In this document: positions 22,901-62,870 of the stretch, in pieces
Layout of the letters: each line of letters starts with the position of its first letter
Numbering within the stretch: the stretch's first letter is position 1
Assembly: GCF_000143415.4 (NCBI RefSeq)
Contig: NW_003314287.1
Coordinates: 1,385,514-1,449,513, forward strand
Source of the DNA: Selaginella moellendorffii
Lineage: Eukaryota > Plantae > Lycopodiophyta
Length of the DNA stretch: 64,000 nucleotides
Direction: 5' to 3'
Notes under the pieces: generated by a model
Databases searched by the model: none
What the model was told of the DNA's origin: nothing
Seen by the model: only the letters and a program-made list of their open reading frames with translations
Program-made: the position numbers and the translations under genes

Positions 22901-23513
22901 AGGTGCCAATGCTCCCAAATGTTTCAAGATGATAGAACGTAGAAATAAAAGGCTGGCTACACACGACCCAGACAAAGGGAACGATTTGAAGCTAAATAAT
23001 GCGAGAAGAGAGAGGAAACATTACCAGTCGTGATGTGTACCTACAATCTCTTGAATTTCCTCCTGTCCAACAATGAGATCGAGGTTAATGTGCGTGAAAC
23101 CTTATCTTCCATTGTTTTCATACCTCTTCCACCTTGAGCCTCAAAAATGTCACCCCTTACACAGCGTCTTCTGCTTCCTGTCCTAGACAGGAGTGAATCT
23201 CAACCTTAAGTAGCTCGTATTTCTTTTGGCACTTTTACATAAATTGGCATACTCCTCGGACGTGAAGAACACAACGCCAAAGGAGATCGGAGCCAGGCAG
23301 AAGAAGAAAGGAGAAGAGAAATCAATTCATTGGCAAGAAATGAGGGCTTACTAGCTTTGAATGTGTAGCAACTGCTTGTAGTCTTCCGCAGTGGTAGTCG
23401 TTGATCCGGGGATGCCACCGCTGCTTGGATCCTGATGCTTTGGAGAGAGATTTCTGGCTTACTGAAATATCTTGTCTTTGAGATTCGATTCTATACAAAC
23501 TATTTGTTTCGTT

Positions 23514-24615
23514 TTATTTTTTCTTCGTCGTGGAGAGTTTCCTCGATTTGGAATGTCGCTGCTGTGACGATTCCCCGCGCGCTGCCTGTGGCCAGTGCCG
23601 CTTGCGCTGGTTTATAAACCAGTTGTTTATCTGCTTTGGTTCCAGCCCGGTGGATTGCGCCAGATTAGACTTTTCGTCCCCCTGTCCAGCACAACGAAGC
23701 AATATGTCAAAGAAAATAAGCAATGGAATGGAAAGGACACATTGAAAGAAACTCACATTGGGATATGGATGATCCTGGTGCTGTGACCACCAGTCCAGCA
23801 GCTGTTGCCTCGCTTCCTTGGGGATTTTTTTCTTCCTTTTCTTCTTGAAGCAGACTCTCTTCATCAGCGTCTTCATCATGAGCTCCTTGTTGCCCGCCAG
23901 TGGATCCAAATCGGTGTCCACCTCTCCAAGATCGGCCTTCTCCATGACCTCGTTCTCGGCTGCCAAAACCAAAGAAAAAACCCAAGAACGAGCGTTAGTT
24001 CCACTCAAAAACTGAGGAAAAAGAGGCGTTCAGCTGAAGTAAAGCCGTACAACCGCCGGGGTCTTTCGTACACAGGCTGTCTATCCTGCAGTAGCAGCAG
24101 CAGCGCTGCTGCTGCTGCTGCTACTGATGAAGATCACGAACGAGTTTCACGCACAGGCAGCACGAGAGAATGGGAAGAAGCGATGACCTGGGTCCCCAAA
24201 TCCGTCGAAGCTGCAACCTGAGATCGAACTATAGCAAAGAAACAAAAAGAAAAACTTTTTTTTGCTCTCACCTTCTGTGCTCGACACGGCTCGTTGTACT
24301 GCAGCTGTCCTGAGATGATCTCGCTATCTGACAGTGAAACGTTGCTGCCGCACCCCGTCGTGTTCCAGTGGAGATGTTCTTGGTGCAGCCCGATGATGTT
24401 GATGCGGGCGGCGACGGCGGTGACGATGTTGTGAATCCCGGCGCGGCCTGCTCTAACATTTCAGCGAGCAGTTCGTGTTCCAGTGGAGATGTTGCCATTG
24501 GCGTGAATGGCGGCGGTGGTGACGGTATAAGTCCCACCGCTGCCTGCTCTAAACCTTGGATGCGCCATTTGTCCACGAAACCTTGCGATTCGCTCATGTT
24601 TGCGAACTCAGCCAT
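23514..24615 (-). pseudogene. Inverted KNOX duplicate: MEINOX disrupted, ELK-remnant/homeodomain exons intact (pseudogene or homeodomain-only gene)
   Basis: Reverse-complement match to 32884-35125. Exon 1 is frameshifted and the KNOX2 exon is deleted. [13 protein letters not shown]...PYPN|[30 protein letters not shown] is intact. Confidence 0.85.
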
Positions 24616-32883: not shown

Positions 32884-35125
32884 ATGGCTGGGGGTTACGC
32901 GCCAACGAAATTCGCAAACATGGAGGAATGGCTCGTCGAAGGTTTGATAGAGCAGGCAGCGGAGGGACTCACAACCTCGCCGCCGCCACCGCCGCCGCCA
33001 TTAGCACCAACATCATCCATGGCGGCACCAAGAACGGAACACGAGGACATGGATCCGCGCGGCAGCAAGGTTTCACTGTCAGATAGCGAGATCATGTCGG
33101 CCATATCAGGACATCCGCAGTACAAGGAGCTCCTTCGAGCACACATGAATTGCTACAAGGTGAGAGCAGAAAAAAAAAAGATTTGTTTTCGTTTTCTTGC
33201 TGTAGTTCGAGAGGGTTTTATGCGAAAATGTAGTTCTCGCCTCTCTCTCAGGTTGGAGCTTCCGCGGATTTGGCGGCCCAGATGGACGAGCTCGTTCGGA
33301 AACGTGAATTCGAGAGTGCCGTCAAGACGAGCATTGGAGTTGATCCAGAGCTGGATCAATTCATGGTAACTTACTCACTCGCAGCTCCAAAGTCTTACAG
33401 TGTTCTACCAGGTTGCTTACTGCAATGTCCTCAACGCCTATGAGATCGAGCTGCGGAGAACTTTCAAAGAGGCCATCGAGTTTTGCAAGAAGCAAGAGCA
33501 CCAGCTCAGTGTCATCGCAGTTAGCAACATCGACGTGCTCTCTTCTGGTAAAGCTCGCAAACACTCTTACAACGCTGCTTGTCCGGTGGCTTGCGTTCTT
33601 GGGTACCTTTTTCGCACTAAGTTTCTTTATACTTGCTGCATGATTTAGTCCATTCCTTCTTCCCATTTTTTTTACGTTGATCGTGCTGCCTGTGAGTGAA
33701 ACTCGTTCATGATCGTCATCACTAGTAGCAGCAGCAGCAGCAGCAGCTTAGCAGGGAAAGATAAAAATAAGAATCCAGAATCATGAGGAATGGAAAAAGG
33801 AAAGCAAGACACATGAGGCAAATTGGTCCGGGGGGTATGGAATAATTCAGCTGATGGTGATAGTGCGAGGGACTCTGATAGTGAGGTGACCTTTGCATTT
33901 AGGAGGTGCCACAGAGGTCTTGTTTTCGCAGTCGTCTTGTTTGGAGCTGGTGGTAAATAGGCAGGGAAACGCAGGTTCCTTGCAATGCAAAGGTTTTTAA
34001 TCCAGATGAGCAGATCTTTACAGAGACGGGTGGTACCTTTTAAATCCTCCTCAGGCTTTGGTGCTATCCAGCTCTATGCATCTCTATAGATTGGATTGGA
34101 TTGGATTGTAACACGCTCTCGTTGGATCAAACGGGGATCGCAAATCCGATAGCGAAAGATCATCATAATCGCCAGCAGCGGCAGCAGCAGGAGCAGTGGT
34201 AGCAGCAACAGCGACAGTTTTGGAAGAAAGAGAGGAAGGGAGAAAAGAAGAGAGAAGGTTTTCGATATCTTTCTCCCTTTCTGCGGGTGATCTTCCGGCC
34301 GATAGGAAGTTTTCACGTGAAGATGGAGCTGCCTGTTCACGTCACCACCATTTTGTGAATGCTGGCTGGGCTGGGCGCTGGCATTCCGCGGGCTAGATTC
34401 GGAACATATCTAATGCGTAGGTGGTCGGATAGAGATGGGAGCATTGATCGCAGGAGTACGGAAGACTCGCGGCGGTTGTACGGCTGTTTTCAGCTGAACG
34501 AATCCTTCTTCTCCGCACTGTTTTGAGTGGCACTAACGCTTGTTCTTGGGTATTTTGCTTTGGTTTTGGCAGCCGAGAACGAGGATGCGAGTGAAACATA
34601 CGAGGATTTCATGGAGGAGGCCGAGAGCGGCGGGATTGGAGAGGTGGACACCGATTTGGATCCACTGGCGGGCGACAAGGAGCTCAAGAAGGTCCTGATG
34701 AAGAGGTATGGAGGTTACATCAAGGGCCTGACGCAGGAATATCTCAAGAAGAAGAAAAAGGGGAAGCTCCCCAAGGAATCGAGGCAGCAGCTGCTGGACT
34801 GGTGGTCACAGCACCAGGATCATCCGTATCCCAATGTGAGTACCTTTGTGTTCTTTCTTGTTGGCATTCTGTGTCTCTTTCTCGTTATGGCTAGTGGGCG
34901 TGCCATGGCTTTGTTCCTTCTTTGTGTCCTTTTCATCGCTTTTTTCTTTGACATTTGCTTCGTTGTGCTGGACAGGAGAACCAAAAGTCGAATCTCGCGC
35001 AATCCACCGGGCTGGACCCAAAGCAGATCAACAACTGGTTTATAAACCAGCGAAAGCGGCACTGGAATCCGCAGGCAGTGCGTGGGGAATCGTCACAGCA
35101 GCGAGACGCCAAATCCAGCAGCTAA
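32884..35125 (+). CDS. Class I KNOX (KNOTTED1-like) homeobox gene, 5 exons with ~1 kb third intron
   Basis: KNOX1 ([22 protein letters not shown]), KNOX2 ([17 protein letters not shown]), ELK ([16 protein letters not shown]), TALE homeodomain ([11 protein letters not shown]...PYP...[15 protein letters not shown]). Confidence 0.95.
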
Positions 35126-35574
35126 TAATGTAAAAACTCTCATGACCAAGAAAGAAAACCAAAACAAAGAACGAGCGAGAACTTAGTGTGTAGAATCGAA
35201 TCTAAAAGACACGATATTTCTCCCACGCAAAGATCTCCCGAGTAAAAGCTACGATCGCTTCAAAGTTTATATCAAAGATACGATAGCATTAGGTAGGTCT
35301 TTATGGCGAGCCTCACTTCGACTGGCCTTCCCGGCAGCATTCCTCCGCGAGGTAAGCCACAGATTTCTCTCCAAGGCTACATTTTTGGATTCGATCCTCA
35401 TCCCCGGACAATCGATGTTACCACGGCGGACGACTACAAGCACTTGCGCGAGTAAGTCCTCCTCATTCATTGCCAATGGATTGGTTTTCTCTTCTTTTCT
35501 GCCTAGCTCCGATCTCCTTGGGCGTTGTGTTCTTCACGTCCGATCAGCTTTCCCACCACATCTCCTCCCTTGTA

Positions 35575-35900
35575 GAAATAAAAGGTTGGCTACACAGAAG
35601 CTCAAAAATGAGAGAGTCGTGATTTGCCGCACAATCTCCTGGATTCCCTCCTGTCAAACAAAGAGATCGAGGTTAATGTGCATGAAATCTTGTCTTCCAC
35701 TGTTTTGATACCTCTTCCACCTTGAGCCTCAAAAATGTCACCTCTGAATTTCTCTTGGCTATTTTGTGCACAGCGCCTTCTGCTTCCTTGAGAGAAGGAA
35801 AGAGAGAATAACGAGTTTCTCTTTCCTGGCACTTACATGAATTGGCACACTCCTCGGATCGTCTCCGTCCAATCTGGAGGACTTGGTGGTGAGCTTCATC
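35575..35900 (-). pseudogene. Repeated coding remnant, possibly thioredoxin-like; further copies at ~22945-23258 and ~61755-61880
   Basis: KEAEGAVHKIAKRNSEVTFLRLKVEEV loosely resembles thioredoxin helix2-beta3 (ELAKK..DVVFLKVDVDE). No WCxPC motif. The DNA repetition is directly visible. Confidence 0.35.
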
Positions 35901-36086
35901 CATCACAAGGAACTAAGACGCCACATACGCGTGAACAAGTTCTAGGCAGATGGTGGTCTCATAGTTAATAAGAGTTGTTTACACTTGTACTCAATTAAGA
36001 AGCACCAAATGGAGGAAGTATATTGTACATTGAGTATATCATAAAACATTGTTGGTTATATATATGGCGCGAAACTTAATACAATT

Positions 36087-36306
36087 ATGGTTGAGATGTA
36101 TATTTTATTAATTGCTTGCCTGTTATGGCTAGTAGCCGATGCCACCACAAATTCTACTGCTGGGAGGGTCGTGTTTACTACGCTCTCTCATGTTTTGTGG
36201 TGAATTTGTAGCTCTTCACCGGAAGTGTGGTCCAACTTTTTACCCCTGTTTACCTTTCAGTAGCATATGTTGCTCATTTTGTACTTTGCTTTTTTGTGCT
36301 TGGTGA
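36087..36306 (+). CDS. Knottin (ICK, conotoxin-like) precursor gene; splice donor reads GG instead of GT
   Basis: TATA at ~36057. Exon 1 MVEMYILLIACLLWLVADATTNSTA is a signal peptide. Acceptor TTGTAG at 36211, then exon 2 LHRKCGPTFYPCLPFSSICCSFCTLLFCAW*. Confidence 0.7.
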
Positions 36307-36726: not shown

Positions 36727-37796
36727 TCAATTCTCGTACAAGAATTTAACAACTATACCATTGAAAGCTTTAGGATTGTCAACTTGAGGAGCGTGCGCTG
36801 CTCCAGGGATGATCTCCAGTTTGGAATCACTCAGATGCCTGTTGGCAAATCGCACATATCAAAACCAGCACAATCTAAAAGCTCATCTTACCTCTGCAAA
36901 CGGTGAGCAAGGTCCACAGTAAAGATTTGATCATTCTCCCCCCACAGAATGAGCACGTCCTGACAACAAAAATTGGGTGAATGTTTTTTCTTCTCTTTCG
37001 CTTCCAACCTGAACGAGTTGAGGAACCACTGGTGGGTTTTCGACCGATCCAATCGCCATGCCATCCAGCAGCTCAAGCCGGTGCTCCCGATTGTAGCAGA
37101 GAACCTGTCCACACAAAATCTCATGAGAACTTCCCCGACCGAGCCAGTGTTTGTTACCTCTTCTATGATATCTTCCACCAGGCAGTCTGGAACAAGAGCC
37201 AGCTTCTTCTGAGTTGCAAACTCCATAGTCTTGCGAGCAACTTGAACGCTTCTCGGCATCAAGACATCGGCCGGATGAGCGACGCCACCTCCAAATCTCT
37301 CCAACATTCGCTGCGAGTCACCGTGATCCATCGCAACCCCGGAGCTCGCCAGCACCACTCTAGCGATCCTCTCTGGGTACAGATGCGCCATCCAGAACGC
37401 CACCATTCCTCCGTAGCTCGTCCCGAGAGCGTGAACCCTGTCCAGAACTTGGAGCTCGTCCAGCATCAGCTTCATACACTGGGCTTGGAAAATCTCGCTT
37501 CTTTCGCCCGACTCGGTCGTAGATTCCCCAAAGAAGAGTAAGTTCGGGACGTAGACGTTGAACTTCTCCGTGAAAGCCAGCAGCTGGTTTTCCCACTCGA
37601 GGAGTGCGTTGAAAACAAAGCCATGGAGCAAGAGTAGTGCAGGCCTCCCCTCTTTTGCTGCTGAAGGAACCCAGCAATCCAAGGTAGTGTTGCCAGCTTC
37701 TATCTTCACTTGCTTTTGCTGCAGCCCACACCTCCTCATGAGTTTTCTTCCCTGCTGGAGCCTGAATTTGATGAGATTGATTCCCAAACAACCCAT
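36727..37796 (-). CDS. Alpha/beta-hydrolase (Abhydrolase_1/6), 4 exons
   Basis: LLLLHGF, YVPNLLFFGES, GTSYGG nucleophile, ILWGENDQIF, GAAHAPQVD. Confidence 0.9.
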
Positions 37797-52074: not shown

Positions 52075-52640
52075 TTCACTGGCAAGAGCTGGAGCTGTAG
52101 CGATGCTCGCTTACCCGCGATTTGCCCCGCATTATCAGCCACGTCATCACCCCCTACGAGGATAACACCATGCTGCTTCGGCGCGCTTGTATAATTCCGC
52201 CACCTCTTAAATATTGAAGAGAAATGCGTGAGCTTGGGAATGTAGTCCCCATCCCTGGTTGGGAATCCACGACTTGGATATTCTTAAGAAAAGTAGGAAC
52301 CAAATAAAAACGCGACGTGTTTTTTCTATTTTGCCTTGTTCTTCACCGTTTTGTTCCATCCCCCCCATTTCATCATGCAGTGCCAAAGGTTGTAGCTGCC
52401 AAGCCCCCAATGGTCGGCTCCTCCTCGTCATTCTGATATCGCCAGACCATGGCCATCTTTTCCTCCCTATTATTTCTCGTTAAGCAAAGCCAATCACGCT
52501 CAATCTGCAACCTTGAGAAGCAAGCAGCTCATAAAAAAAAACGATTTAACAATTTGATGAGAATTTTCACCAAAAAGAACAACAAAGATTAAATTACTCT
52601 GGAATGCAACTCACCAAGCACAAGTGAACAAGGTGCAAAA
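52075..52640. repeat. Dispersed repeat unit, also at ~61240-61725 and ~62050-62705 (partly inverted)
   Basis: GCAAGAGCTGGAG..GATTTGCCCC.CATTATCAGCCAC..CCCCTACGAGGAT at 52082 and 61250; AAATATTGAAGAGAAATGCG at 52209 and 62170; CAATCTGC..AGCAAGCAGCTC in all three. Confidence 0.85.
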
Positions 52641-52690
52641 TTTGCAACATCCTTTAGTGAAAGGTAAACACGGAAAAAAGGCTCCATAAG
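52611..52690 (-). pseudogene. 5'-truncated knottin copy (..YGAFFPCLPFTKGCCKFCTLFTCAW*)
   Basis: Reverse complement aligns with 36226-36306. The first Cys and signal exon are missing where the AT-rich island begins. Confidence 0.8.
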
Positions 52691-54099
52691 CTTTTAATTA
52701 ACATCAAGCTAGATAGGTATAATTTCTTTCTTTCTTGCTTCAATTGTAATCTGTTATAAACCTTGCCTCAAAGGACCTGTTATAAGCTTTGGCTTAAAAG
52801 GAAGTGGTTCTTGATGCTCCTTGTTTTTCATTAGCAATTAGCATATCATCTTTTACTTCCCTTAATCTGTCGTACAATTCATGGGGATTCCATACTGACA
52901 TCACTTTGGCCAAGATTATGTTAAGGCTCTATTCCTGAAAGTAAAATTGACATTTTTAGTTTTTTATCTGGAAATCTAAATGGTGTGTTGACTGAATGAT
53001 GCATTTTCTTTAAACAAATATCTATCACATCAGCAAAGCTTATATGAAATATTTTAACTTGTTTTATATATGTATGTATTTACTATTTTAGATTTTGTAC
53101 CACTCAATATTGCCATAGCAAATTAAGTGGTGTGTTGACTGAATAATGTATTTTCCTTTAAAAAGTATATACTTGGTTTAGATATGTATGTATGTGCTAT
53201 TTTTAGATTTTGTACTGCTCACTATTGCAAAGCTAAGTAATATGTTGACAGAATTATGTATTTTCTGAAAACAATATGTGACATTAGCAAAACTTCTGTA
53301 TATCGCTGAAATTCTTCCTCATTACTAGCATTCTCAATATTTGGTTCAATTTATCCTTTAGGATGAAATTATTTAACCTTTTTTACATTCCTAAGTTAAG
53401 GAGTATATTTGGTCAATTGTTATGCATTGTTTTACCATCTAGATCTTTACATTCTTGAGGGGCCTCAATGCATACTCTTTTCGCTCCCAAACACTTTGGT
53501 TTGACCAATATTCTTCACCTTCTTTCTCAACATTTAGTGAGGGAGTGTACCAAGACTAGTCATTAAACTTTGTAGCAAGCATGTAAAGTGTTTTAGGGTA
53601 TAAAGTCTTCAGCTTGTTATAAGAAATTAAATTTGAACTAAATTTTGTTTACAAGGATGTTTAGTCCATGTTTTTGTGAATGGAAGTTAAGTGCTGTAAC
53701 TCTCTTAGGAACTCTATTCTCTTGACACCCTACCTTTTTTGAGCTCAACTAAACCACTAAATGTCAATATAAATATATAGTGTGATTCTTTTATCTAACA
53801 AATAGAGTCGGACATAATACATTTCTAATATGAATTATGAACGGTTAAATTTAAACTTTTTAACCAAGTATTAATTAAACCAAAGACACTTAACCATAAT
53901 AACCCATTGGAAAAAGAAAGTGCACTTTATTCATGGATTCTCCTTCCATATTTGAACCGCTATAGATTATATCTCAAATTGTTCTCTTCAATTCCCTACA
54001 TTTATAAGCACAAAATAGTGATATAGAAATGTCATTGAATTTTTAACATTGAATTAAAGGAATATATAAAGAAATAAATAATTTTAGTACATATAAGAT

Positions 54100-55380
54100 A
54101 AAATATAACACTATCTATCTTACAAATTTCAATTTATTTTAAATTTAAATTATATTTCTCATAATTCACTCCTAAAGGCCATTAAAATCTGTATTTAAAC
54201 AATAAATATTATTGATTTTTTTTAAATTCATATAAAATATATTTAGTAATACATTTTTCTCATAAAGTTATAGCAATTAGATATGGCATACATTTATCTG
54301 TATTTAAACAATAAATATTATTGATTTTTTTTAAATTCATATAAAATATATAAAGTAATACATTTTTCTCATAAAGTTATAGCAATTAGATATGGCATAC
54401 ATCCTTAGTGTCGTAACACAATATTTATATTTTAATTCTCTTTTATCAAATTTGAAATTTGATCCTCTTTATATGTGCACTATATTTTCATACAAATGGT
54501 AAGACTTACATAATATAATATATGTACAACAATATAAAAGTCATAATAAAATTATATAATAATTTATGTTTATAATATTTTGCATTTTTCTAGAGGATTT
54601 CCTAATAAAATTTATTTTAGTTTAGAATACCCAAAAGATTTAACTGACAAAGGCATTTTACTTTTTAATACTATATAAACCCAAATGCTTAACTCCAAAA
54701 CCCTTAAGCACTTATCCTCAAAATTTAATTCAGCAAACCAAAAAGTATTATGTCCATAAGATATAGACCACATAAGTTCATACTTTTTTATAATTTCGAG
54801 ATCTAATTAAATTTTTTGATGTTGTTCTAAACATAATATGCGGACATCAAGTTATTACAATTTATTATATGTGTACCTTGAATAAGTACATATGATATGG
54901 CCAACATTGTAAAGGATAATTAATACTAATATTAGAAATATTATTATGGGCCATCTCTTGAGATATCTGAATTTAAGAGTTGATCTAACATAATTTTAAG
55001 ATAAATACAAGAATTGATAAGTGTTCATTACCAAGTATTATATAAGAATATTAATTAAATGTAATTTTTAAAATTTCACGAAAATTCATTCTGACATATA
55101 ATTATTAAAAAGTAGTATAAAAGTTACTTCTCTTCTAGCAAAACTTTGATGATTTTATTTCAATTACAAATTTATGAACATGATTCATAATAATACTAAA
55201 GGAAAATCAGATTATAATTAAACATATCAATGGTTGTTGTATGCAAGATACAGTAAATTATTTTCATTTTCAATTTTAGATATGATGGTCATTTACTTAT
55301 AGTAGATGATAAAAACAAATACTATTGAAACAATAGTATTTTTAATCAAAATAGTTTAATTTATTGGATTAAGAATTTTT
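54100..55380 (+). pseudogene. Decayed paralog of the 56081 lectin-domain ORF
   Basis: TATATTTTCATACAAATGGTAAGACTTACA (54481) vs TATATTTTCTTACAAATGCTAAGGGTTACA (56405); GATGGTCATTTACTTATAGTAGAT at both 55284 and 56846. Contains a ~109-bp tandem duplication at 54188-54402. Confidence 0.8.
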
Positions 55381-56080
55381 TTTAATATTTAGTTCTAAAT
55401 ATCTCTTTTTATTCCATATTTTGGATGTCTCCATATTCTAGTTGTATTCCATATTGATTTGTTCTTATTTTCCTAGTTATATCTTACCTATAATTTTTTT
55501 TTATAATATTTTATATTAAATTTTAAATTTCTTTCAGAAACGTATAGTTAGAATATATATTTATCATGCTTTAATACAATTAGTGGTTAAATATTATTTA
55601 TTCATTGCCTAAATCTTATGCTGATTGATATAATAAAAATAATATTTTTGAGGATCTAACATGAAATGTCTTACTCTCATAGTGTCACTAGGAATATTAA
55701 ATTGATTATCCTTTTATTATAGTTGTTTGGAGTCCTTGCTTAGCACCAATATGGAGTAGGTTTCTCTTTCTTACATATTACTAAAGCTATATAGCATTAA
55801 TTATATCTATGAAATTCTTAAAAGTGAAAAAATAAAGATTTTTTAATTTAAAATATCAAATACTAAAGTATATAAAATACAAAGAAAAATTGATTTTAGA
55901 CAATATCATAGATGATAAAAAAAAGTACTAAATTTAAATTCAAAAGCATAAAATTCGATAACTTTATAGAAAAGGTGATGTTTAAACAGAAGTTTCAAAG
56001 TTGATAAAAGCTATATAATAAAAGTTTTTATAAATCTATAAAATAAATTCCCTTATAAATTCAACTAGCTACCTAATAAA

Positions 56081-57013
56081 ATGCTTTATAAATTTCTATG
56101 GTTAATGTTAATTAGTTTCAATTGTTATGCTCAACCTCCTGAAACAAGATGGTATGGGGATATTGGTCATTTTAGTAACAGAGATATACTTAGGATTTTA
56201 AATTCTATAGAACAATTAATTCAATCAATTAATAGTACAGATCAGATAATAGTTCATAATCATGGACTTGTAATATATCAAGTAATTCATGTTGCTTATC
56301 AAAATGTAGTACTAAGACTTTCTATACATCCTGCTGGTATAAGAAATTATATTAATTGCAATCCACTTCCATCTAATTTTCCATTTAATCCTTTATATGT
56401 TCGATATATTTTCTTACAAATGCTAAGGGTTACAGAATATTATGCTTGTACAACTGCACCAAGAATGATAATAACAGTATATAGATATTTTGCTCTAGAA
56501 TATTTTGGTTTAGGAGTTCCTGCAAGAAGTCCTAATGAGATTTATCCAACAATAGACTATCCTAAAGATTTACCTGATGAAAGCAGTTCACTAACTAATA
56601 TTTATACTATAATTGATAAAGATATATCACAATGTTGGCCATATCGTACACAATTGATAAATGGACCTTTAAAATTTCTTGGTACACATATAATAAATGG
56701 TAATAGTTTGATATCTGCAAATAACAAGTTTAGAGCAATTTTAAAAAATTGTAATTTAAAAGTGAAAAATATAGAAAACTATAAAACTATATGGTCTACA
56801 ATGTCCTATCGTGATAATACTTTTTGTTATCTCCACCTTCAAGTTGATGGTCATTTACTTATAGTAGATTATAAAAATAATATTATATGGAAAAATAACA
56901 TATTTTATAAAAATTATATTATTTATGCAGTTTTAAAAATTGAAGATATAGGATATTTAACAGTAACTTCTCAATTTAATGGATCTAAAAAACTAATATG
57001 GATAAATAAATAA
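56081..57013 (+). CDS. Secreted 310-aa protein: unknown N-terminal domain + C-terminal bulb-type (GNA/B) lectin domain, intronless, AT-rich
   Basis: Signal peptide MLYKFLWLMLISFNCYA; B-lectin pattern GNSLISANNKF..NCNL..TIWST..LHLQVDGHLLIVD..IIW..LKIEDIGYL..IW; TATA-like TTATAAAT at ~56053. Confidence 0.75.
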   Translation: MLYKFLWLMLISFNCYAQPPETRWYGDIGHFSNRDILRILNSIEQLIQSINSTDQIIVHNHGLVIYQVIHVAYQNVVLRLSIHPAGIRNYINCNPLPSNFPFNPLYVRYIFLQMLRVTEYYACTTAPRMIITVYRYFALEYFGLGVPARSPNEIYPTIDYPKDLPDESSSLTNIYTIIDKDISQCWPYRTQLINGPLKFLGTHIINGNSLISANNKFRAILKNCNLKVKNIENYKTIWSTMSYRDNTFCYLHLQVDGHLLIVDYKNNIIWKNNIFYKNYIIYAVLKIEDIGYLTVTSQFNGSKKLIWINK

Positions 57014-60000
57014 AATAGAATCTATTTTCTATTTCTAAACTTTAAAACTAAATAAGCCCATTTTTGGTCATGTCTTACTTTTTGCTTTAATCACCTTTGA
57101 ATTTTATATCAAATTAGGTGATGTGATATAATTAATAACTAATCAATTCTAATTAGGGGAATATTCATTTTTATTAAATAATATCTACCAAAGAAATACT
57201 AAGAATGAATTGAGCTACTAAAGCTAATAAAAATTAAGTCTTTGATGATGTTTTATTGTGATAAAAAAGTGTACTTTACCCATATCTATAAGAGATACAT
57301 GTATATTTAAAATATAAGAAAACATGCTGGCTGCTTTTGAGATTTTCATCAGCTGTGATAGAGCACATCTAGATAATGTAAAGAAAAATAACTTAAAAAA
57401 CCATAAGAATCACAAAAAAAAATTTAAAAATTAATCCGATGAGTCATTACATCTCAAGCTATTAAAGACAATGTGAAAGAATAAATAAAGAGAAAAAACT
57501 TATCTTGATTTCTCATAATGGAATCACCATGCCTCCAATCTACTTTATGGATTTCATATCCTACCTAAAGAGTGCTCTGTGAAATCTAGTAGCTTCATCC
57601 TAAAACTTAAATTGCAGTTATCTTAATCAAATACTATCAGACAAGAATAAAACAATATTTGTGTTGATAGAAAATGAAAACTGTAATCAGAAGCAAATCT
57701 AACTATGAATGTGAAGTTTTATCGGAGTTTATAATATATATCCTAGTTTGTAGAAATATGAATTTCTTTGAGATTTTAAAAGTTAAATGTAAATATAATG
57801 TAGCATACTATAGTCAACAAAAAGATAGTCCATGGAGAACTTCATAGTTATAGCTTTTGCTTATAATAAATATAATGTTTCAAATTGCCACTTGTTATAG
57901 ACCAATTAAATTGATATAACATTTGATGTTTATGATCATAAAAATTTCACACATAAAGCTCTTTTAAATAGAAATTTCTCCATTTTGAAAAGGATTTGAT
58001 ATCTAAAATTCTACTTCAAGAGGTCTCTAAAGCAATGTATATATATCAGGGTATATCCATTTGAAAATCCTCAATAGAGCACTTAATATGATTTTCTATT
58101 CTATATACATAGCTATTCTTAAAAGAGAAATAAATAACCTGAGAGTCCACTTGTTAGAAAGATAGTTTCAACTTGAGCTTTGAGATATTTCACAACTACC
58201 TCTTCACTAGAACATCTAGATCATAAACTATTGCAAAAGTAGGAAGTTAAGCAAACAAAAGGAATTGTGCTTGTTAAGCTTATGAGCAAGACAATTCCAT
58301 GTTTATAGTCCCTTTTTGTCCATACTCCCTCAATATGCAGCCAAAATTTAGGAATGTAATGATGGTGAAATTACTTGTTTAGATATTGAAATCTTGTATG
58401 ACTTTTATCAAAATATGGTTCAGAAGTTATTCTAAATTAAGTTAATTTAAAGTTTAGACAAATGAACATTCTTAAGATCAATATCAAAGAGAAAAGAAAG
58501 ATTCATATAGAGGAAGAGAATAGCTAAAAGAATGTTTAGATGGTTCAAAAACCTTATTGCTAACAAAGTTACCATATCTATTGCAAAAAAGATACCTTAT
58601 AGCAATCATCACCTTTTAACACTAGCCATGGAGAAGAAAATGGTAGCTTCTCCCAAATTAGCTACCATAAAGGCTTCTTCTTTCCTTGTGAGTGCACTAA
58701 AGCAACTATCACTTGTAAGCTCCCTACCCTGAAGGGGATAATTTAAAATTGAGATGCCCAGCATAAGTCAATGCAAGTCAACATAGTCAATTATAAGTCT
58801 TTAAAAGGAAATTTAAGTTGAAAAAATGAAGCTTTTAAAAATAATTAGTATACATTGAGTCACATAGAAGTTCATGAAAATGTGTCATTTTTAAAATTAT
58901 ATTATTTTACAATTCATTAAAAGAGCTTAAATATGAATCAACAAAAACAAGCTGAAATATTTTAACAACTAGTGTATGTTAGTTAAATAAATATATATTT
59001 ATATATTATTCCTTTATTTGAAAGAGTTCTCTAGAGTTCTTGAGAAGATGGAATTCTTTCAAATGAAGAGATAGTAAGAAAAAAAGAAAAAAAAAACAAT
59101 AGTACAAAGAAATGTGAAAATATAAATTTTATTTCATTACTACAATCTATTTTTTGTATCTTTTTTATAAATACACAAAAATCTAGAATTCTAAAAGCTC
59201 TTTTCTTTAAAAGTAGGCTAAAATTATAAAATCCCATATCAAATATTAACAATTAAAAAATTATGTATTATCAGTGTTATAATAATTTTCTGTGCATTGC
59301 ATATAGTAACACTTGGTTTGCTTACTAATATGTTATTCCTATTTATTATTCCAACTAATCAAAAAACATGTTTGTTATTTATAAACACAAGATTAATCTT
59401 ATTAAATATCAACCATTAGATGGTAAAATAAACTAGAATATACTAGGAAGTACTTAGGAAAGTTTATAAAATAAAAACATATTTATAAATTATAAATACA
59501 AGATTAATCTCAATGAATAACAACTGTTGGATAGTAGAATATCCAAGCATATTCTCCACTTCCTCAAACCAATAAATAAACTATATTCTTAAAACTAAAA
59601 TTTAATATATAAATTGCTAAGAAAAGTTATAGTTGTTAGTTGTTATAATATTTTTGTTGCCCTTAAGCTCCTTGAAAATTTGAAAAGTTTAGTAGAAGAA
59701 CGGCTTAAAAATAAATCACTACTATTTATATTTACACCCCACCCCCACCCCCTAACATCTTATATCAATCTCTATCTCCGTCTCTAAATTTTATCAAATA
59801 TTTTACCTTCACCTCAATATAACAATCCTGTCTTTACTAGGGACATTAGTGAAGTCGAATTAAAACTCTCCATATATGAATTTTTTTACATTGTTATTAG
59901 AGTAAGTGGAGTCCCACATGTTTTTCCAAGATCTTACTCTTGATATAATGGGATTATTTGAAAGTACATAATGCTATTATATTCAATGTTTAATATGGTT

Positions 60001-62681
60001 TTTTCTTTAGCAAGATAAGTGTCTCCATGGGTCTATAAACTTTCTTTGAGCATTGTAACAACTGCCCAACAATAAATTTCAAAAATATACACATATGGAT
60101 GTATAATAGACATATAGCCACTATCACTTTATAGTGAGGAACAACATCCTTTTACAAAACATTGTATTAATTAATGTTAAATACAGGATTTTTATGTCAT
60201 TATATAGTGGAATGTAAAATCTAGAACTGTTTTATTATTCTATAATATTATCCTTTAAGGAAATGAAAATATATATATATAATAAAATGATATTAGTTGT
60301 AGATAGCATAACTAAACAACCCCAATTGGATGTATAAACTTATAACATGTATAACAAAAGTTAGTTTTAAGTTATTTTGTGTATCATGGATTCTGTTTGA
60401 AAATATAATATGTTTTATGAAATTTCAAAACTTTTTTTTCTAGGTTATGATATGAACTTACTCCTGCAAAAACACATATGATAGGCTTTGTGTGAGGTAT
60501 ATATTTCCTTTTGATATGATAGTTCTATTAACATTATGCCCAACATTGTAGATAAGTAAATCCATAACACATTTCTTGGGTATTGATTTTAAACTCCACT
60601 GCTGATGCAAGTATTGCTTGAGGCTTTTTATAAGCATTTAAATTTTCTATTCTATTTTAATCATTCAACTATATTTTTTACCATTTAGAGGAATTTCACA
60701 ACTTTAATCTCAACATGTTCTGTGATTCCTTTAGCTAACTAATAAATTCAAATCTGAAACTTTTCTAATACCAAATATAAATTTTTGAATTTAAACTTCT
60801 ACTTTAGCCACTGTAATATGGCTCACCTTTTAAGAATTTTCCTTTCACAAGCCTACTGATACAATAAAAGGTAGAGACTTTCCACCAAATCTAAAACTTA
60901 CTCATCTTTATCTCCATTATCACTACAATTGCATAGTTGCCTTTTGGTCTAGTGTAGGTGGTTTCCTTCCTAAAGAGCTTTAACTCCAAAGTGCAATATA
61001 TCTTCCATACCTTTAGAACTTTCACAAATATTGTCCAAGTACATTTTCCATCCTTTCACCCCTTGCAATAAGAGTGCAAATTAGTGCCTCAAGCATATTG
61101 AAGATACCAACACTTGCAATCAAACAGCAAAGGTGGTAAGTGTACATACATGATAAAATGACCAAGTCGAGTACAGAAGATGCCATAAAACTACTCAATC
61201 TCCAAGTTGTGATAATTGGCCAAAAAACTATGAGTGATTCCTTCACAAGCAAGAGCTGGAGTTGTAATGCTGCCCAATCACCTGCCTGGCGTGATTTGCC
61301 CCACATTATCAGCCACCCCCTACGAGGATATCACCATGCCGACTCCCACCTTGAAGCGGGCACACTCATAGAAAGTACGATCTTGCCGCCCTTAAAAGCA
61401 TGAGCTTGGGCAGTGTACCTGGGCTTTCCTTGTTCAAAGCAGAGCAGGCTAGAATCTCTTGTTTCAAAAATTTCCTCTCTTTACAAGAGATGCTAGCCTG
61501 CTCTGCTTTGAACAAGCCCAGGTAAACAAAGAAGCTACAGTCATGAAACAAAGAAAGGGAAATGTTGTTTTGTTCCTGTCTAATTCTTTCTTGTAAAGTC
61601 AATCAGGCTACTGATCTGCAATCTGCAGCAAGCACCGAGCAAGCAGCTCTCTGCTGGCAGAAAACCTCAGAGAGTTGCAAAGAGATTTGAGTGGTCACAT
61701 TAAGAGAATTTCACCCAAAAAGAATTAGATTACGGTTCACCAGCTCCTCCCTTGTGTTGGCTACACAATCAATGGATTCCCTCTTCAAACAAATATAAGA
61801 AATCTTTCGATACCTCCTCACCTCTGGATTTGTCTTGGCTATCTTTGCGTCTTTCTCCTGGCATGATGAATTGGCCGAATGTATGCCAAACCTAGGCGAA
61901 AGATCTCAATCAGCAATTAGGATGTATTTACACGACTTGTAGTTGTCAACATTGATCGGTGCCACCTTTGCTTGGATCATCTCGGATCAAATATGCTCTT
62001 ACCGCAACACTGCTAGGATAATCTAAGATTGGTCTAATCCTTTCACCAGTAAGAGTTGGACTGATAATGTGGGGCAAATTTCAGGCGGGCGACCGAGCAC
62101 CACTACAGCTCACATCATCACCCCTGCTCCCACCTTGTGCTCTCAACAAAAACAATTTCGCACCTCTAAAATATTGAAGAGAAATGCGCAAAAGTCTTCT
62201 TTGTAGGAACCAAACAAACTTCAATAACTCCGTCAGTTTTTCTGACCGTATTCATGATCATGTCCTCTACTGTTTCACTCATCTCCATTCATGTTCATGT
62301 GAAGTCTAGCTCAATCCTGGCCATTCCATATCAATGTCATGCTGTACCAGGAAGGCAGACCATACGCCATGGCTGTGAAAATCATCCTCAAAACGAAAAC
62401 GGCAGTCGAAACAAGAGTCTAATTAAGCCTTAGAGAAAGGGGAATGTTGTCTTTCTTTCTTTCTTGTTATACAATCGCACTACTGATCTGCAATCTGCCG
62501 CAAGAACCGAGCAAGCAGCTCTCAGCTGGCCGGAAACCTCACAGAATCGCAAAGAGGAGTGCTCGCGTTATAGTTCTCTCAAAATAAACAGCAAAAGTGC
62601 ACAAGATGAAGATGACTGTTTCTCGTACGTAATTACGAGGAGAAAGAAAGAAAAGAAAAAAGAGTACTCTTGGAATATTAA

Positions 62682-62870
62682 TCAGGAAGCACAAGTGAAC
62701 AAGGCGGCGATTGCCGGTGTACACCTGGAAATAGGCTGGGCCACATTGCCGGGTACACCTGGAAATAAGGAGTTGAATGGGTGTAGCTTACCAGCAATAT
62801 AACCTGATCTACCGCAATCAACCACTAGCCACAGCAGGCTAGCAATTAGTAAGAAATACATGCTCCTCAT
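62682..62870 (-). pseudogene. Third knottin-family copy with intact signal exon and GT donor but the cysteine core deleted
   Basis: MRSMYFLLIASLLWLVVDCGRSGYIAG|gtaagc...ccag|VHRQ, then directly LFTCAS*. TATA box at ~62902-62910. Confidence 0.75.

Follow-up and report, generated by a model that had tools for sequence, protein, structure and literature searches.

The spacer between a KNOX gene and an alpha/beta-hydrolase gene of Selaginella moellendorffii holds a real, unannotated two-exon gene (locus A) for a six-cysteine peptide that was presumably secreted. Most likely, locus A is a polymorphic pseudogene, or at most a gene that is dispensable and whose constraint has been relaxed. Because both of its alleles and the two copies found nearby (copies B and C) are lesioned, and neither RNA nor a relative was found, it can most likely be understood as a lineage-specific gene that is dying, and not as a working toxin. 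Overall, we consider it probable that these sequences represent a lineage-specific family of secreted cysteine-rich peptides in decay, with locus A persisting as a polymorphic pseudogene. The analysis covered a stretch of 64,000 nt (the window), which belongs to scaffold GL377591.1 (GCA_000143415.2) and is 100% identical to it over 5 kb at the hydrolase locus.

Locus A lies in a 1.6-kb spacer bounded by the KNOX gene (plus strand, coding end near 35125) and the hydrolase gene (minus strand, 36727-37796), between which the annotation calls no gene. A first-pass annotation, made from the letters alone, had outlined a TATA box, a start codon, a signal exon with a GG at the donor position, an AG acceptor and a second exon, and all of these were found as described (Table 1). 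The TATA-like run next to the gene is conserved in the second haplotype, and a further TATA-like element upstream aligned with TATATAAAACATTG of copy C in three-way alignments; both may serve as promoter elements. Exon 1 translates as MVEMYILLIACLLWLVADATTNSTA (25 codons) plus one base. By inspection, this leader has the features of a signal peptide: a 12-residue hydrophobic core, YILLIACLLWLV, with small residues at -3/-1 (A-D-A), followed by TTNSTA. Exon 2 encodes a 26-residue peptide (36226-36303) that carries no charged residue. The arrangement C-x6-C-x6-CC-x2-C-x4-C claimed for this peptide was present at 36226-36297, and both the order of the cysteines (C-C-CC-C-C) and the loop lengths fall within the knottin range.

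Table 1. Features of locus A in the window haplotype and of its copies (positions in the window).
Feature	Position	Strand	Description
TATA-like element	36036-36050	+	Aligns with an element of copy C; putative promoter role
TATA-like run	36056-36066	+	TTATATATATG; promoter-proximal; putative promoter role
Locus A exon 1	36087-36162	+	ATG at 36087; signal-peptide-like leader; phase-1 end
Locus A intron	36163-36211	+	49 nt; donor GG (GGAGGG) at 36163-36164; acceptor TTTGTAG, AG at 36210-36211
Locus A exon 2	36212-36306	+	..LHRK, then CGPTFYPCLPFSSICCSFCTLLFCAW, stop
Alternative unspliced 55-aa ORF	36139-36306	+	Exon 2 behind a weakly hydrophobic N-terminus
Copy B, exon-2 relic	52611-52694	-	K-A-Y-GAFFP-CLPFTKGCCKFCTLFTCAW-stop; 76% identical to locus A exon 2
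Copy C exon 1	62790-62870	-	MRSMYFLLIASLLWLVVDCGRSGYIAG; phase-1 end, then GTAAG
Copy C intron homologue and scrambled exon 2	62682-62789	-	33-nt intron homologue; 34-nt tandem duplication

The two-exon model was examined against the second haplotype, GL377599.1, which was reached via the allelic hydrolase protein. The GL377599.1 allele is ~94% identical across the gene. Its donor is canonical (GCTG|GTAAGG) at the same phase-1 position where the window has GG, the alleles differing there at 36164 and 36166, and its intron is likewise 49 nt long with the same TTTGTAG acceptor. The three introns of the neighbouring hydrolase gene measure 50-53 nt. With a GT donor, a preserved phase and an intron length that matches those of the surroundings, the second haplotype validates the two-exon model, and a spliceable GT-AG intron between the signal and cysteine-rich exons is present in that haplotype and absent from the window haplotype. 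This bears out the caution attached to the original gene model, namely that this copy might be a pseudogene or an allele a single step away from intact. The GG donor was also seen in a contig of run X1, which probably derives from the source data of the assembly. Six nucleotides past the donor position, at 36169, a weak in-frame GT (GTCGTG) occurs that could rescue splicing in the window haplotype, adding two residues.

Neither of the two locus A alleles examined provides an uninterrupted precursor frame, and their lesions are separate. The window haplotype lacks the donor GT and three residues of the n-region: exon 1 of the second haplotype is longer by 9 nt (MVEMRSMY..., as in copy C), and the M-R-S is missing from the window. 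Both the second-haplotype leader and that of copy C contain an arginine in the n-region. The second haplotype, in turn, carries a deletion of one nucleotide ahead of the last Cys codon, at the counterpart of 36285. Its frame shifts after ..CCSFCT, where a Cys appears one residue later, followed by a 66-residue unrelated, largely hydrophobic tail; the shifted reading comprises 91 codons, in which five cysteines are kept and the sixth is displaced. This deletion was seen in the assembly only and could be an assembly error. Copy B ends in ..CTLFTCAW-stop, which identifies the exon-2 frame of the window haplotype as the ancestral one.

Both copies of locus A elsewhere in the window are incomplete. 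Copy B, the exon-2 relic, has Tyr in place of the first Cys and a first loop shorter by one residue, and keeps five of the six cysteines. An in-frame stop is located three codons upstream, and no exon 1 could be recognised. Copy C is the paralog at 62790 to which the first-pass annotation had pointed as having an intact donor. Copy C does retain a TATA-like element, a start, an exon 1 and a GT donor, and its leader (MRSMYFLLIASLLWLVVD...) resembles that of locus A (73% identity over exon 1), whereas beyond exon 1 only the ends of exon 2 are shared and the six-Cys frame is lost. The central Cys region of its exon 2 is gone, leaving the HR(Q)CGP.. start and the ..LFTCA(S)-stop end, so that four of the frame cysteines are missing and two are kept. 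The two haplotypes of copy C differ by 1 nt, as a result of which the exon-2 remnant is read in different frames. An independent DNA run (X4) yielded a contig with a variant collinear with locus A, in which exon 1 is shorter by ~70 nt and exon 2 carries two amino-acid changes. We found no exon-2 copies beyond A and B and no exon-1 copies beyond A and C within the window. Lesions were present in all six sequences examined (both haplotypes of locus A, copy B, both haplotypes of copy C and the X4 variant).

The surroundings of these copies are arranged differently in the two assembled haplotypes. About 230 nt upstream of locus A, a segment of ~320 nt (35539-35858) is inverted, with 83% identity. 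Collinearity ends at 52512, 100 nt from copy B; there, GL377599.1 joins ~9.7 kb that are absent from the window and contain no further copies, after which it runs from 64000 to 61413 in the opposite orientation. The break at 52512 is either a large inversion or a flip introduced by assembly. A further 2.5-kb stretch found only in the second haplotype is situated at 61413/61417. Between copies B and C lies an AT-rich island (~53000-61500, GC 0.21-0.35) in which no gene is called; it includes a 310-aa ORF (56081-57013) with a weak B_lectin match, a protein that is not on record. On the other side of locus A, a KNOX homeobox fragment was detected at 23517-24029 (minus strand) besides the annotated KNOX gene at 32.9-35.1 kb (34527-35042, plus strand). 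A local partial duplication is suggested by short matches, in both orientations, between 35400-35860 and 22939-23414.

We assessed how far the locus rises above chance. The generic C-C-CC-C-C pattern matched once in the window, compared to 0.07 matches expected per 64 kb from order-2 Markov shuffles. A chance occurrence would thus be seen in ~7% of windows of this size, and hundreds of chance matches to the motif would be expected genome-wide, leaving ample room for chance as far as the motif alone is concerned. What lifts the motif of locus A above chance is that a signal exon adjoins it in phase, that two copies resemble the locus in the exons only, and that an allele with a canonical donor exists. 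Relative to shuffled sequences, the similarity of locus A to copy C in exon 1 reached z = 12 and that to copy B in exon 2 reached z = 13.8, while the upstream, intron and downstream sequences of the copies were no more alike than shuffles (z from -1.3 to 0). In addition, copies A and C agree in their start codon, in the position of the phase-1 donor and in the acceptor.

These observations bear on the view that there is no gene here at all, merely chance ORFs in a T-rich intergenic spacer, with the similarity among copies left over from a non-coding RNA or an ancient dispersed repeat. The frequency of the motif and the lack of annotation, RNA and homologues in the searches made agree with that view, which the confinement of similarity to the two proposed exons, the shared gene landmarks, the GT-AG intron of locally typical length in the second haplotype and the synonymous excess between copies A and B (below) make distinctly improbable. 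Its two specific forms were rejected. For a dispersed repeat, the similarity is too closely limited to the exons, and the contig depths in run X4 (~49-320) correspond to one to few loci rather than a high-copy repeat, within the limits of contig depths. For a non-coding RNA or miRNA hairpin, there was no match in Rfam, and neither strand of either exon was unusually stable (fold z from -1.2 to +1.2).

A different possibility is that the functional unit is a single-exon protein, either the unspliced 55-aa ORF that overlaps locus A or a read-through ORF of 62 aa in copy C (62685-62870, minus strand). Both are uninterrupted in the window haplotype. The copy C ORF begins with a good signal peptide and has only three cysteines; it is open because the 33-nt intron homologue, a multiple of three, stays in frame, and at this length the intron homologue is probably too short to splice (local introns measure 49-53 nt). 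In the second haplotype, the 1-nt difference costs copy C this frame. Two ATGs precede the start of the 55-aa ORF, whose N-terminus corresponds to the intron of the conserved model and which is absent from the X4 variant; the frameshift of the second haplotype falls in the very exon-2 frame that this ORF uses. Neither ORF is on record as a protein. We regard the 55-aa ORF as unlikely and single-exon function in either form as highly improbable.

Selection on the two-exon gene was estimated from the copies and the alleles. Exon 2 of copies A and B differs by seven synonymous and 13 nonsynonymous changes (omega ~0.33). We conclude from comparison of the sequences that the family was probably protein-coding and under purifying selection over a long period in the past. 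Between the two haplotypes of locus A, exon 1 shows no mismatches in 76 positions apart from the 9-nt indel, the intron four in 49, exon 2 seven in 94 (7.4%) plus the 1-nt deletion, and the flanks 21 in 578 (3.6%). The difference in allelic divergence between exons 1 and 2 was significant (Fisher p = 0.017). Before the frameshift, the alleles differ in exon 2 by six nonsynonymous changes and no synonymous ones, which are too few for significance; from site counts, the probability of finding no synonymous change among six is ~0.23 under neutrality. This allelic pattern fits relaxed constraint and would also fit diversifying selection.

The latter option belongs to the principal alternative to decay, that of a live, fast-evolving gene for a secreted knottin-like peptide in defence or signalling, of which at least one allele or close paralog elsewhere is expressed and processed. 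In favour of such a gene, the anatomy of the second-haplotype allele is canonical, and an invariant signal exon in front of a second exon with nonsynonymous changes only is a pattern that diversifying selection also leaves, conotoxins and plant defensin-like (DEFL) genes being examples. Five of the six Cys codons are shared by copies A and B despite 24% divergence, the cryptic donor at 36169 is in frame, and intact paralogs may exist elsewhere in the genome. Against it stand the lesion in every sequence examined, the non-significance of the allelic pattern, and the outcome of the expression, homologue and structure searches described below. On balance, we consider a live gene doubtful, though the most plausible of the alternatives to a family in decay.

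Evidence of expression was sought in assembled contigs of a few sequencing runs, and no run on record as RNA held the locus A stretch; small, tissue-specific transcripts are easily missed in such data. Contigs of two runs that we guessed to be RNA covered only 35850-36033, upstream of locus A. The pieces concerned are 35850-35949 (93% identity, in runs of two studies) and 35977-36033 (~95%, in one run), both situated a short way past the end of the KNOX gene and bordered by dissimilar sequence in the contigs. They resemble a small repeat or else part of a paralogous transcript, either an exon or a UTR.

No homologues were found among 1.8-5.8 billion proteins, including predictions from assembled sequencing runs. 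A word-indexed search of proteins yielded no candidate, whether the query was the 55-aa ORF or an alignment that combined locus A (with X at the break) with copies C and B. An exhaustive profile search of 1.84 billion representatives returned two matches, both to unrelated FIPCLP/YPCLP repeat proteins, which were discarded. Likewise, our literature search retrieved no description of Selaginella knottins or of such a family in S. moellendorffii. Within the sequences and collections examined, there was thus no intact or expressed homologue, and the six-Cys frame was not conserved, which are the outcomes that the first-pass annotation had named as speaking against its reading.

The knottin assignment was tested with profiles and structure prediction. 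Nothing in Pfam scored above its cut-off, and none of the described knottin families there (conotoxin, Toxin_12, cyclotide, albumin-1, squash inhibitor) gave a profile match; the scores obtained were 15.1 bits for Agouti (PF05039; E 0.025, cut-off 27) and 11.4 bits for Siva. The nearest clusters in the ESM Atlas included Toxin_12, omega-atracotoxin and cyclotide. These language-model neighbours, with sub-threshold scores of 0.75-0.85, are leads only, and as such speak for a live knottin-like gene. The structure prediction proposed in the first-pass annotation was run with AlphaFold2 on a two-sequence alignment and gave a low-confidence single helix (mean pLDDT 52.6, pTM 0.20), with no strands and no knot, a model too weak to weigh on either side. 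The order and spacing of the cysteines fit a knottin; beyond that, the knottin and defensive readings of locus A are unproven.

Two more specific elements of the first-pass annotation fared no better. The proposed basic processing site, HRK, is replaced by HGT in the second haplotype and by K-A-Y in copy B. A conotoxin-type precursor, with a superfamily signal, a pro-region and a conserved basic site, was contradicted by this variability and by the lack of a match to the conotoxin model. The broader suggestion of an undescribed defensive knottin family gained no support from sequences that all bear lesions and have yielded no RNA contig, homologue or HMM match.

For the family in decay, which we prefer, the ancestral precursor would have consisted of an N-terminal ER signal encoded by exon 1, a phase-1 intron of ~49 nt in the gene, and a hydrophobic six-Cys mini-domain with knottin-like spacing encoded by exon 2. 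The pre-peptide would have entered the ER co-translationally, and the signal would have been cleaved after A-D-A. Oxidative folding would then have given a mini-protein with three disulfides, destined for secretion to the apoplast, the usual path for plant cysteine-rich peptides of defence and signalling. Secretion, the disulfide fold and any biological role of the family are all inferred, whereas the anatomy of the gene, the lesions of its alleles, the confinement of conservation to the exons and the negative outcome of the homologue and RNA-contig searches were observed. As for the decay, the window haplotype has lost its donor GT and three signal residues, the second haplotype is frameshifted, and copies B and C are relics.

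As the evidence stands, locus A provides a model of an unannotated small-peptide gene that can be verified from the second haplotype, and a case in which each haplotype carries a different disabling lesion; both should help in annotating small cysteine-rich genes and pseudogenes in S. moellendorffii. A more far-reaching proposal is that S. moellendorffii possesses a lineage-specific family of hydrophobic, three-disulfide, knottin-like peptides that evolve in the style of conotoxins, with intact expressed members elsewhere and the cluster in the window as their graveyard. We think this unlikely. If true, it would imply that the design of knottin precursors arose independently in a lycophyte. 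Live members, if they exist, would be the first secreted peptides of knottin-like type to be described from any lycophyte. They would place the emergence of a layout in which a conserved signal precedes a hypervariable Cys-rich tail in early vascular plants, and would extend the range of known mini-proteins by a scaffold that is uncharged and very hydrophobic.

Among known systems, we compared locus A to the plant knottin-type peptides Mj-AMP/PAFP-S, the amaranth alpha-amylase inhibitor and legume albumin-1b. Like locus A, these are made from small precursors with a signal peptide, and have six cysteines with a CC doublet in third and fourth position and mature parts of ~26-37 residues. They show no detectable sequence relationship to the locus A peptide, whose last two loops (x2 and x4) are shorter than in the plant families. 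In contrast to plant knottins, the locus A mature peptide is uncharged, which is unusual among soluble knottins, and no copy examined is intact.

Locus A resembles O-superfamily conotoxins and the ICK toxins of spiders (framework VI/VII) in pattern alone. The Cys spacing of locus A is within their range, the layout of signal, short spacer and Cys-rich C-terminus is shared, and the invariant signal exon combined with a mature part that varies between alleles is a conotoxin-like trait. Unlike these toxins, locus A has no Pfam toxin match and no conserved basic site, and it belongs to a plant and is interrupted by a phase-1 intron. The C-terminal domain of Agouti/AgRP (PF05039), the sole scoring resemblance noted, has its first five cysteines spaced as in locus A. 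Agouti domains, which are found in vertebrates, contain ten cysteines, as opposed to six in this plant peptide; with a score below the cut-off, we rejected homology and attribute the resemblance to a coincidence of spacing.

Plant DEFL/CRP clusters consist of two-exon genes with an intron just after the signal peptide; they form local duplicates, escape annotation, are subject to rapid turnover and comprise many pseudogenes. The locus A peptide, from a lycophyte, differs from the DEFL peptides in its six cysteines with a CC doublet, an arrangement other than the defensin CSalpha-beta, and has no sequence match to them. In its genomic habit, the family follows the DEFL pattern: its intron comes after the signal exon, its copies are local, and its members are unannotated and decayed.
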